Below are positions 27,172-32,887 of a DNA stretch of 64,000 nt, one piece after another. The notes beneath the pieces are model-generated. The model saw only the letters and a list, made by a program, of their open reading frames with translations. It searched no databases and was not told the DNA's origin. Source of the DNA: Amoeboaphelidium protococcarum X5 (taxonomy: Eukaryota; Fungi; Aphelidiomycota); assembly GCA_023515725.1 (NCBI GenBank), contig JALDTO010000098.1:90615-154614 (forward strand), read 5' to 3'. Position 1 is the first letter of the stretch; each line of letters starts with the position of its first letter. The translations under genes and the position numbers were made by a program.

Positions 27172-27879
27172 TGTACAATACGCTGAGTGATTACATTATG
27201 GTGTTTACTCACTGCTTCTGCTACGATTGGGGTGAGGATTTATGATTGCTCATAGATTATCTTCTTCGCTAATGATTATATACTACTGTTAAAATTAAAT
27301 ACGATATCTAATATGATTTATTATTTCAACTTTTGAATTTTTATATAATTGTGCTGATCACCATCGTACGTTGCTGAAGATTGGCAAAGCTGTTGCAGAT
27401 CTCACCGCGTGATTGGCTGGTAACAAATTCCGACCTGTCATCATTAGGAACATTTTACAGAACTCTTTCAAGTGTACGCAGAGGATTTGAATGTCTTCAT
27501 CTTTCAAATTGTTGGATAATTTAACAATATAGATAGGTGTAACAGTAATATGATTGAATGTTCTTACAAGAAACTTGTGCAATTCATCAATGATAACGTG
27601 TCAATGTTGAATGTGTCAAAGCCTCGAGTTGCTGTCGTAGTTGAATAATCAAACCATTCTAGAGCTCCATTCGATAATAACGTACAGATAAATCGAGTAT
27701 CTACATGGGAGAAATATGTAAATCACGTTGATTTCTAGCATTAAGATGAGTCTTTAAAGTTTCTGTTTGACATATGCAAATATGAGCAAGAGTACAAGCG
27801 ATTTTAAGGACTTTTGTCCAAACATACGGCAGCTCAAGATGTAGGAGATGTTCCAGTAGACTTAATTAGTGATTAAGAT

Positions 27880-28050
27880 TGTTAAGAAATGATAAGTAAA
27901 ATAGATGATATAAAATTACTGTATTTCTTATCATGAAAAGATTCTCATACTTGACCTTATCTGAGTCCGTTTCACCTCTAACCTTAGTGTGGGGATATTG
28001 TGGCATGAGGCGCAGCGGCTCCATGTGGATGTTTGATCATAAATCTGACA
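27880..28050 (-). repeat. 3' LTR (171 bp)
   Basis: Identical to 32196-32366 by manual comparison. Confidence 0.97.
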
Positions 28051-28061
28051 CGCCGCCGTGA

Positions 28062-31000
28062 TCAAACACTCTGCTCGCCGCCGTGATCCTCCACAGATTC
28101 AGACATTCCCATCATATCACGAAGCGCAAGAAACTTTTGAGTCGGCAGTGGCTTTGTGAGTATATCTGCAAGCATTAGATCAGTAGGGCAATAGACAACA
28201 CGTAGATGACCATCTCGCACGCAAGTTCTGATGAAGTGATGACGCACGTCTATATGCTTTGTTCTTGAATGAGTCTTGTTACCATTAATAACGGCGATAG
28301 CACCTTGATTGTCCTCATGTATAAGTGTGGCGGCGTCCTGTGTCCACCCTATTTCTTGCAGTAATCTTCGCAACCAAATAGCTTCTTATGCAGAGTTGGA
28401 TAACGCGATGTACTCGGATTCACAACTAGACAGAGCCACTATATTTTACAGCTTACTTTGCCAAGATACTGGAGAATTAGCAAGCTTAAACAGATAGCCG
28501 CCAGTAGACTTCCGACCATCGGTATCTCCTGCCCAGTTCGCGTCAGACCATCCTTAAATCACGGTCCCGTGTTCTCCACCTAACTAAATACCCAACTTAC
28601 TTGTGCCCTTCAAATACTTACAAATCCTCTTTACAGCAGTCCAATGCTTTTGACCCGGATTAGAAGAAAACTTGCAAACCTTTCCAACAGCGGCTGATAT
28701 ATCAGGACGAGTTGCACATGCAGTGTATAATAGAGCGCCGACGACTTGTTAATAAGGAATTTCTTACATCAACTCTTGTTCTTCTTTCGTCTAAGGACAG
28801 TCCTATAGTGACAAAGATACTGTAGAGTCCATGGGGGTTGGTGCTGGTTTCACGAGACTCATCTAATAATCCTCCAACAGTTCAGCAATAAATCTGTGCT
28901 AGTGCAACAATATCGTCTTCGCTTATCTGTCACGCTCGATATGAAGTCCAAGGAAATACGATGCCGGACCGAGATCAGTAATCTCAATCATGGCCGCGAT
29001 ATCTTTCTTCAGCTTCTATGCTTGATCAATCCCCTTAATACCAAGTAGCATATCATCAACATGCGCCAGTATGAGGGCATCATCTTCTTTTCTGTAGAAC
29101 AGGCAATGATCAGCCTCTGTTGGAACGAATCCAAGTTATGCTAAACATTGCATAAGGTGATTATACCATTCTGCCGCAGCCTACTTCAATCCATAGAGTG
29201 TCTTGAGGAGTTGAAGTTTAACATCGTCTCCGCAGTCGAGTAGGCCACCTTCCGGGACTTCCATATAAATTTCCTCCTTGAGTTCAGGCACGACGAAAGC
29301 CTAAACGGCATCAACTTGCTCTATCTCGTAATCAAGAGAGGCGCATTTGGATAGCATTATTCTGAGTGAGTTCGTTCTTGCTGTAGGTGCATAAGTCTCC
29401 TAATAGTCCACCCCGGAAACTTGTGAATAGCCCTTCGCGACCAATCTAGCCTTGAATTTAAAATCGCCAGACGCAGTCTTCTTCTTAGTAAATACCCATC
29501 GACACTTGATTACACGGTCTCCCTTTTGTCGCTAGACCTTCCTCCATGTCTTTCGATTCTCAAGTCCATTAATTTCTTTCATCATAGCCTTGTAATAATG
29601 ATCTCTGTCAGGTCCTGATAATGCTTCGCGCACACTTTGCGGATTTCTCTCCAACTTTGTAGTGAGTGCTTTAAATTGCTTTCGCACTCTTTTTCCACTG
29701 ACTATATTAGAAGGATCAACTCTAGACACAATCTCTTTAGGCGCAGATGGAGTAGGGTCTGGGACAACAACATCGGTAGATCCAGGTTAGGCATTGTTAG
29801 GAGAAGAAGAATTCATTGCAGGCGCAGTTGGCTGTGGAGCTTACAGAATGTCAAGATCTTAAGTCGGTTAAGATTAACTTTATGACAGTATCTGAACTGC
29901 GGCCTCTTATGATGAATGATGGTGCACCGGTGACATAAGGGGAACAGTGAACTCTTGCAGAGTCGTTTCTTGACTTGCCGATTTAGAGTTTTAGGGGGAG
30001 TCATAAGCTAAATCTACACCAAACTTCTTTTCTTTAGGAAATGTAAATGCGTTGGAGGTTATCAACTTTTGGCGCACAATATCATAGAACCGCAATATCG
30101 ATGTAGACTCAGTATAGCCCATAAAAATGCATTCTACAGCACGCCGATCCAGCTTGAACCGCTTTTCAACAGGAACATGAACAAAGGAGTGCTGGCCAAA
30201 TATTTGCAAATGACTCGTCTTCGGCAACTTACCTGACCATACTTCATAAGGGCTTTTAGACTATGGGTTGGAGCTAGATGGACTAATATTGCTTAGATAC
30301 ACTGCAGTCAGCGCAGCCTGGCCCCAAAACTACTCTGGAAGCTTTGACTCCATCAGCATAGTGCGCACTTTATTGAATATAGTCAGATTCTTCCGCTCGC
30401 TAACACCATTCTGCTCAGGAGTGTAAGGAACCGTAAGCTCATGCATGATGCCATTGTCCTACAAATATCCAGTGAATTCGTTAGATAGGTATTCCTTGGC
30501 GTTGTCCGATCGCAAAGATTGGACTACAACAGCAGTGGCACTCTGAACCAAAGAGAATTGACTCATTTTATGCTCACCAAATGTCGCTGACTATACACAT
30601 ATTCCTTCATTACGCAGCTTCTAATGCACATATTTAAAACACTTGATAGCCGCAGACCTTCTTTTCATCAGAAAAGCAAGAGTAAATCGCGACTTGTCGT
30701 CAGTGAATGTGATGAGATATTGGTTGCCATTGATGTCTGCAACTAACGGGCCACAGATATCTGTGTGCAGACGCGAACCATTTTTGTCTGCTCTACTATC
30801 CGTAGGATGCATTGAGGGGCGCTTATTCTTACCAATGATACAAGAGATGCACTCAGAGCAATCCTCAGCTTTAATGTTGCCTATCCCGTGATCGTTGCAA
30901 AATTTGACGACATCTTTGACATTAGCATGACCCAGCTTAGAGTGCATATCATCGCATAACTCCTAAGAAGACTGGGAAGTGAGAGAGAGAGCTTGACTGC

Positions 31001-31391
31001 CAGAATTGGATACAACTCTCCATAAGCCGTCTCGTTTAGACTTTACTCCTTGCCATAATAGCTCCTTAGGCAGTTTCACGTGGTCTTTGAAACATGACAC
31101 TGTCTATCCGTCAAACAGAACCTTGTATCCAGAATTGCAGAGCTTGGAAACAGAAAGCAGATTCTCCGATAATGTCGGGCAATACAAGACATTGGAGAGT
31201 TCAAAACCCTGTGAGTTGCTGTTGAAGGTTACACTACCACGCTTGACGCATGTCATTGACGCATTCGCTGTACCAACCTGAGTACGAAAGTTAGAGGAGT
31301 TAAATAAATTATTTTATGTATTAGTGAAGTGATCACTTGCTCCGCTATCAATAATCCAGGACTGATCAGCCTTATGCATCACCAGACTATG
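28062..31391 (-). CDS. pol: copia pol (protease, integrase, RT, RNase H), in frame with gag after a single TGA
   Basis: WIIDSGASDH; HSKLGH..CISC; LHTDICGP, RSDNAKEY, PEQNGVSER; FKARLVAKGYSQ, LYGLKQA, HVDD; SDANWAGD, RTKHIDVRHH. Confidence 0.93.
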
Positions 31392-32174
31392 TCATTCAGC
31401 AGCCTTAGAAGCTTTCTGCTACCCCTTGCAAAACTTACTCCCTTCCGAGTGATTGAATCTCTCCATTCCTGCTGACTTGCACTTCTGACATACCGGTCTC
31501 AAGTGTGGATGACACTTCCAACAATCAGCGCCGCGACATTCTCCTGGATGCTTTGCTAACTTCATAACCTTGGATGCATTGATACAGGCAGCGTCCTCAG
31601 TGATACAGCGCGACATCAGGATGTCGCGTTTGACAAGAGCCGCTTCAGTGCCTGCCACCGCACGCACCACTCTTAGATGTTCAGGCAGTCTGCCAAGTAG
31701 AACCATTGTCACAAGATCGCTGATTTTGATCATATCAGAGCCACCATTTGCGTGGATTAAGGAGCGCTCAATAGCTTCCGCTGCGGTAAAACCGTCCTCC
31801 ACTCGATCACCAAATTCAAACGAGAGAAGTTCTCCAAGGTACTCGAGGCGACTAGCAACAGTTTGTCTAACAAAGTGCTTACTCAGCTACACCCACAAAT
31901 CAGACGCCTTATCGCAATCTATGAATTTGCCAGCAAGGTCCATTGATATATTTGCTTCGATGGCGAAGGCGGCCTGGTCAGTGTCCATCGGGACTTGCTT
32001 CACTTCGTCCCAGGCTTTCAGCAGTTTCAGCAGCACCTTCATTCGTTTGACCCACACAAAGTAATCCGACTGTACTTTCAGCATGCACCAATTGTGAATT
32101 CTGATAGACGCGTCGGCGTCTTGTGCAGCTGTAGCAGCAGGAGTAGAAGAGGATGTTTAAGCACCAGTCGGCAT
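31392..32174 (-). CDS. gag: copia gag, 260 aa, ending in TGA
   Basis: ATG 21 nt after the 5' LTR; DYFVWVKRMKVLL, LLGRLPEH, Cys/His-rich C-terminus; TGA at 31392-31394. Confidence 0.85.
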
Positions 32175-32195: not shown

Positions 32196-32366
32196 TGTTA
32201 AGAAATGATAAGTAAAATAGATGATATAAAATTACTGTATTTCTTATCATGAAAAGATTCTCATACTTGACCTTATCTGAGTCCGTTTCACCTCTAACCT
32301 TAGTGTGGGGATATTGTGGCATGAGGCGCAGCGGCTCCATGTGGATGTTTGATCATAAATCTGACA
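32196..32366 (-). repeat. 5' LTR (171 bp)
   Basis: Identical to 27880-28050. Confidence 0.97.
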
Positions 32367-32887
32367 AAGATGATCAAGATCTTGTGATTGATTGCGATTC
32401 GACCAATTCATGCAGTAGTTCGTCTATAATTGGCATATTTTCATCAAGTACGCAAGACACTGTATCTATTAGAAGCAGCATGTAGTAGCCTAGTTCTTAA
32501 CTTACTGTGGCCATTGGGCGCGTAACGTTGACGATCAATCAATCTGTGAGACGCGTTGAAACAAGCGCATCAATTGCCGGCAATAGACTGTAGCTGATGT
32601 TTGAGTAAATTGTGTAAAAGTACCTCTTACCGGGTGTAGCTATGGAATTGAATATTTCATCCAAAGAGAGGCGTCTCATATAAGATCAGCGATTGTCACA
32701 AGGCACCCCAGAACCGTCAATGTTTAGAAAGCTACGCGATGATGTTCTGGTTAGTCTGTATTAGAGTTCATGGCGAACATTTTGGACGTTGCAAAATACA
32801 AAATTTCAAAACTGATGATAAAAAGTAGGTAGAAAGTTGATACATTACCAAACTTTAATCTTTAGACACATTCTTACTATATCAATA

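Follow-up and report, generated by a model that had tools for sequence, protein, structure and literature searches.

In murine leukaemia virus, gag and pol are separated by an in-frame UAG codon, and a downstream pseudoknot is essential. Among copia elements, the closest precedent for the junction described here is Tca2 (pCal) of Candida albicans, which carries gag-UGA-pol in one frame and translates Pol from the full-length RNA; when tested in S. cerevisiae, however, its 300-nt junction did not raise readthrough above background, and how the stop is bypassed has yet to be settled (PMC2194720). The fission-yeast gypsy elements Tj1, Tcry1 and Tosmo1-3 have a conserved GAA-TGA-CT at the end of gag with no required structure (PMC10085805), and Tj1 loses its activity when the gag stop is removed (PMC4600332). 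Short-context UGA readthrough is, according to PMC10085805, also known from Sindbis virus, from fungal and animal peroxisomal enzymes and from four mammalian genes.

Amoeboaphelidium protococcarum, which has a genome of 24.7 Mb with 40.5% GC (PMC10608142), belongs to the lineages in which UAA and UAG encode Gln (PMC5304391, PMC11687900). The constraint added by this host is that UGA is the only codon able to serve as a leaky stop. Here, we analysed a copia element located in a 64,000-nucleotide stretch of its genome (the window), in which gag and pol occupy a single frame interrupted by one TGA at 31394-31392. Judging from the comparisons described below, this TGA probably works as a leaky stop in a Ty1/copia element capable of transposition, with readthrough driven by its sequence context. 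The features of the element are as follows:

32367..32371, no strand, partner 27875-27879: 5-bp target-site duplication AAGAT flanking the LTRs
32196..32366, minus strand: 5' LTR of the copia element, a 171-nt repeat identical to 27880-28050
31395..32174, minus strand: gag ORF, codons 1-260 (code-6 translation), with a Cys/His array near its end
31392..31394, minus strand: single in-frame TGA, codon 261, candidate leaky stop in the context GAA-TGA-CAT-AGT
28062..31391, minus strand: pol ORF, 1109 codons plus the terminal TGA-T, in the same frame as gag
31338..31358, minus strand: protease active-site motif WIIDSGA (code-6 translation)
31107-31313, minus strand: Pol_BBD (Pfam E 1.1e-8), adjoining WIIDSGA
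30828..30977 (C98:121442-121591), minus strand: zinc-finger region at the N-terminus of integrase (HHCC, gag_pre-integrs), after which the rve core begins
28830..29552 (C98:119444-120166), minus strand: reverse transcriptase RVT_2 (E 1.2e-50), with 9 TAA/TAG codons within the match
27880..28050, minus strand: 3' LTR of the copia element, the identical repeat, with TG..CA ends

With TAA and TAG read as Gln, the frame 32174..28062 on the minus strand spans 4113 nt, that is, 1371 codons including the terminal TGA, and it contains 17 TAA and 19 TAG codons (36 in all). Our recount of this frame agrees with the initial annotation that a lone internal TGA interrupts it at the gag/pol boundary; the other two frames of the same strand contain 33 and 52 TGA codons over the same stretch. 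The placement described there holds as well: the TGA is the 12th codon past the last Cys of gag, the W of WIIDSGA is the 12th codon past the TGA, and an ATG is the fifth. The LTRs, likewise reported as identical, are 171-nt direct repeats with 100% identity, accompanied by the AAGAT duplication. Past the TGA, the Pfam domains follow one another as Pol_BBD, gag_pre-integrs with rve, and RVT_2, so the integrase precedes the reverse transcriptase, and this order, the TG..CA ends of the LTRs, the 5-bp duplication and the RVT_2 match identify a Ty1/copia LTR retrotransposon of the Pseudoviridae. The central 155 aa of gag have no Pfam match at E <= 0.01, and the name gag is given solely for the position of this ORF and its Cys/His array. 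The active-site box of the reverse transcriptase is A-H-V-D-D instead of the Y-V-D-D usual in copia elements; because it is kept both here and in a second family of the same genome (family B, below), it is probably functional.

The element resembles Tca2 in being of the copia type and in having gag and pol in one frame with UGA between them. In Tca2, however, a pseudoknot is predicted 3′ of the UGA, while MFE folding gave no sign of a structure here, and the Tca2 host uses UAA and UAG as stops, both of which encode Gln in A. protococcarum. The likeness to the Tj1 group lies in the bases around the stop, since GAA-TGA occurs in the family of the window element and in three others, one of which (family D) has the complete GAA-TGA-CT, and in the proximity of the gypsy families of this genome to tRNA genes, which Tj1 shares. 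The Tj1 group, on the other hand, belongs to the gypsy superfamily and lives in standard-code hosts, whereas the window element is a copia element in a host where only UGA terminates translation. With murine leukaemia virus the element would have in common an in-frame stop that sets the ratio of Gag to Gag-Pol, as we propose here, but the viral UAG would be a Gln codon in this host, and the viral pseudoknot contrasts with the lack of structure seen at this junction. Finally, the short-context cases share with the present elements a signal confined to the bases adjoining the UGA, with TGA-CT present in five of our families and the full TGA-CTAG in one (family E); those cases are viral or cellular genes of hosts with three stops, whereas ours are gag-pol junctions of retroelements in a host with one.

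We searched the genome (23.6 Mb in 346 contigs, GC about 40%) for further copies of the window element, referred to below as family A. Two more copies are identical at the junction and both have the TGA, one at C264:1510328-1514110 and the other at the end of contig C318. The remaining relatives (n=3) are diverged and all decayed, with frameshifts, truncation and extra TGAs. One of them, on contig C235, is 90-92% identical to the window element and has TGG at the junction site, while the two others (C264:668k and C212:731k) are about 80% identical to it, one with TGA and the other with TGG. The latter two represent one old truncated insertion beside the same host gene in two duplicated regions, spanning C264:666500-674500 (L009) and C212:726500-734800 (L010). 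A search for eRF1 returned two eRF1 loci (C264:1263764 and C207:970221) and two Pelota-like loci in the genome, and, taken together with the paired decayed insertion, these suggest large duplicated or homeologous regions. The neighbourhood of the intact copy on C264 is a nested or tandem cluster (C264:1500500-1510499, L015, together with C264:1510328-1514110), in which a family D element lies within repeated partial family A copies that include one pol segment twice, with a 3′ end at a distance of 5 kb.

A sense codon in sibling copies had been named by the initial annotation as a finding that would speak against a programmed stop. Such codons do occur, as TGG in two copies, but both copies are decayed with frameshifts, and sense codons at the junction site are found in dead family A copies only. 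Given that two decayed siblings have TGG, Trp can at least be reached from the junction codon in one step. Considering that removal of the stop abolishes transposition of Tj1, an element that lost its stop would be expected to die.

Family B, a copia family with two near-identical copies (L013, L014), allows the junction to be compared over a much longer distance. Its protein identity to the window element is 41% in Gag and 56% in Pol, and synonymous sites are saturated (pS 0.83-0.85), with pN of 0.43 in gag and 0.31 in pol. Family B nevertheless has a single in-frame TGA at the homologous ..A-E-TGA site, 12 codons ahead of DSGA. Because pN is much lower than the saturated pS, both sides of the TGA appear to have been under purifying selection; the TGA is thus conserved across divergent copies in the way that the initial annotation had proposed to look for.

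Using the RVT_2, gag_pre-integrs and Retrotrans_gag profiles, we found that the same layout extends well beyond these two families. Seven copia and four gypsy families, whose independence as samples is incomplete, show exactly one in-frame TGA apiece in an otherwise open polyprotein frame, always in frame 0:

copia A: TGA between gag and protease, GAA-TGA-CAT
copia B: TGA between gag and protease, GAA-TGA-GAT
copia D: TGA between gag and protease, GAA-TGA-CTT
copia H: TGA between gag and protease, AAA-TGA-CGC
gypsy G1: TGA between gag and protease, GAA-TGA-CGT
gypsy G2: TGA between gag and protease, CAA-TGA-CAG
gypsy G3: TGA between gag and protease, GGG-TGA-CTC
gypsy G4: TGA between gag and protease, GGA-TGA-CTA
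copia C: TGA past protease, separating HH from CC in the integrase zinc finger, CCA-TGA-CTT
copia E: TGA past protease, separating HH from CC in the integrase zinc finger, GTG-TGA-CTA-G
copia I: TGA past protease, separating HH from CC in the integrase zinc finger, TTA-TGA-CAA

In families C, E and I (loci on contigs C233, C314, C164, C207, C136, C212, C249, C264, C253 and C169), Pol_BBD lies upstream of the TGA, which falls 4, 11 and 10 residues, respectively, past the GH of the zinc finger. Two decayed copia families, F (L023) and K (L032), have it 4 and 10 residues past the GH, and the gag_pre-integrs profile match spans the TGA uninterrupted in E, I and the decayed K. The position of the TGA within the integrase zinc finger implies a split of the products into Gag-PR versus IN-RT-RH, and, because the TGA lies inside the HHCC domain, a working integrase in these three families needs continuous translation across it. 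The Pol tree places family I with A and B and joins C and E to D, a grouping which indicates that the stop has shifted position at least twice. One gypsy family (L038, C290:1-2162) runs continuously from the CCHC knuckle of gag to the protease without a TGA; the in-frame TGA is therefore common but not obligatory in this genome. A further candidate, L012, with an apparent in-frame TGA between long open frames, was rejected, as it consists of host genes and spurious frames with no retroelement; such spurious open frames are common in this genome because only TGA stops.

Several of these families bear marks of recent activity. LTR pairs are 100% identical and flanked by target duplications in families A, B, D and I, and D, E and I are each represented by three or four copies with the same ORF layout and junction sequence, the directly compared copies encoding identical protein. 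Identical LTRs, target duplications and identical copies show that elements carrying the TGA transposed recently. Two copies of gypsy G1, separated by dS of 0.12-0.17, gave dN/dS of 0.35 and 0.20, and both have the TGA. Elements of gypsy families G2-G4 are found beside tRNA genes (Met, Pro, Gly, Gln, Lys) that point the opposite way and lie about 130-250 nt ahead of the beginning of the gag frame (L042:860-933, L044:788-859, L045:722-792, L047:2428-2502 and L048:767-839), an adjacency reminiscent of Ty3 and Tj1, whose insertion is directed by Pol III.

The bases flanking the junction TGA are strongly biased. The following base is C in 10 of the 11 families, the exception being B (TGA-G), and the preceding base is A in nine. 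As a host sample we took 48 non-overlapping ORFs of at least 300 codons without similarity to the elements, in which the base after the terminal TGA was T in 19, A in 17, C in 7 (15%) and G in 5, and A preceded the terminal TGA in 9. The excess of the following C at the junctions (10/11 versus 7/48) is significant by Fisher's test (p = 3e-6), also with related families collapsed (7/8 lineages, p = 1e-4), and so is that of the preceding A (9/11 versus 9/48, p = 1.5e-4). The terminal TGAs of pol in the copia families (n=7) are followed by T or G, once by A, and by C in none of the seven. UGA-C, UGA-CU, UGA-CUAG and a 5′ AA are all cited as readthrough-prone contexts in PMC10085805. The A-UGA-C context is not exclusive to the junctions, as two long host ORFs in the window terminate with TGA-CAT, a caveat already raised by the initial annotation that stands.

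The RNA downstream of the stop, where a search for a stem or pseudoknot had been suggested as a further check, showed no sign of structure in MFE folding. Folding of 60, 90 and 120 nt past each of the 11 TGAs gave no signal (z from -2.2 to +1.6, mostly positive), and the 123 nt downstream of the TGA in the window element gave z = 0.15, with no structure.

Metagenome contigs, scanned with a conserved C-terminal piece of pol, revealed relatives of the window element in standard-code hosts. Two of them have gag-TGA-CTG/CTA-protease (Ga0114978_10020249, L070:928, and Ga0194133_10039270, L122:1086) and one has protease-TGA-CTC-integrase (Ga0307507_10040689, L077:1154), while many others consist of one uninterrupted ORF. 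As standard-code relatives possess it, the layout is a trait of retroelement lineages and is not tied to the code of the host.

Several other explanations of the junction TGA have to be considered. A dead element, with the TGA created by a recent nonsense mutation or by faulty assembly, is extremely improbable: decayed siblings with TGG do exist, yet the TGA is common to three assembled copies, which makes a local assembly error unlikely, and the LTRs are identical. A chance nonsense hit, judged unlikely from the window alone, becomes more so with the homologous TGA kept in family B over saturated divergence and with the same layout in ten other families, as a random single hit within the 24-codon linker is expected in about 2% of cases per family. 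It is also quite unlikely that the UGA is read by a dedicated factor, be it a suppressor tRNA with a UCA anticodon, selenocysteine insertion, or a position-dependent sense reading as in ciliates without a dedicated stop. In favour of such a factor, two stop codons have already been reassigned in this host, and TGG stands in place of TGA in two decayed copies. Against general sense reading, Trp in the window element is encoded by TGG 19 times and never by TGA outside the junction, nor is there a second in-frame TGA in any of the other ten families; as for selenocysteine, a search of the genome for tRNA-Sec returned no match, and an Rfam search of the window element returned no family and no SECIS.

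Some of the RNA might have the TGA spliced out with an in-frame intron, which would generate a gag-pol fusion mRNA. Splicing is among the possibilities left for Tca2 (PMC2194720), and the window element does have a suitable pair of sites, GTATGT 99 nt upstream of the TGA and CAG 33 nt downstream, delimiting a 132-nt in-frame intron (31493..31362) that ends just ahead of the protease motif. We nonetheless consider splicing very unlikely, as a consensus donor is missing from the 400 nt upstream of the TGA in 6 of the 11 families, the closest relative B among them, and genomic RNA that had been spliced would lack the segment at the next round of replication. Another donor-like motif, GTAAGT at window positions 31433-31438, 44 nt upstream of the TGA, is kept in all family A copies and falls in conserved coding sequence (E-G-S-K-F-C); it offers no intron that spares both the frame and the protease site, and since no in-frame acceptor downstream spares that site, the motif is probably coincidental. 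Pol might also be made independently of gag, by reinitiation, from an IRES, or from a subgenomic RNA driven by a promoter in the junction as in Tca2, where a weak one has been described (PMC2194720). The ATG five codons past the stop, which the initial annotation had offered as a reinitiation site, is in frame in the window element, but a downstream ATG is not conserved, being found at +10 in B, at +20 in D and at no fixed place elsewhere. Nothing in independent translation calls for a common frame, yet frame 0 is kept at all 11 junctions (a chance of about 1.5e-4 for eight lineages), and in C, E and I, where the TGA divides the zinc finger, only continuous translation can rebuild that finger. 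Free Pol would, moreover, need another route into particles. We regard independent synthesis of Pol as unlikely; the family comparison, with the homologous site in B and the A-UGA-C bias across families, favours the programmed in-frame UGA put forward by the initial annotation.

Under programmed readthrough, most ribosomes would stop at the junction TGA and release Gag, while a minority would decode the UGA by a near-cognate tRNA, most plausibly tRNA-Trp(CCA), and, remaining in frame, would produce Gag-PR-IN-RT-RH. Readthrough would thereby set a low ratio of Gag-Pol to Gag, and its signal would be the immediate context, with A before and C after the UGA, rather than a downstream RNA structure. 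What the sequences show directly is the architecture and its conservation, together with the bias in context and the elements' recent activity; from these we infer the readthrough itself, its rate and the inserted amino acid. A wider proposal, which we put forward tentatively and hold to be possible rather than probable, is that a bare A-UGA-C may suffice for regulated readthrough in a lineage where only UGA stops, that nearly all LTR elements of this genome may depend on it, and that the stop may have moved repeatedly, with sites between gag and protease and at three different codons of the integrase zinc finger.

The gag-UGA-pol strategy is already known in retroelements, and A. protococcarum is a newly described setting for what appears, from the sequences compared, to be a real and well-supported candidate. 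Our literature search returned no paper linking retrotransposons to Amoeboaphelidium or to readthrough in hosts that read UAA and UAG as Gln, and no description of a stop between protease and integrase, or inside the integrase zinc finger, in copia elements. For annotation of such genomes, gag and pol should be joined across the TGA, and not treated as separate or broken genes. The gag-stop-pol strategy appears to persist in a host with a single stop codon, which provides at least 11 natural in-frame UGAs with a common A-UGA-C context and no RNA structure detected. This panel of junctions may reveal how efficiently a release factor restricted to UGA terminates translation and which tRNA competes with it. 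If the bare A-UGA-C is indeed what is read, these elements would constitute a natural system in which to measure a UGA-only eRF1 against near-cognate tRNAs.
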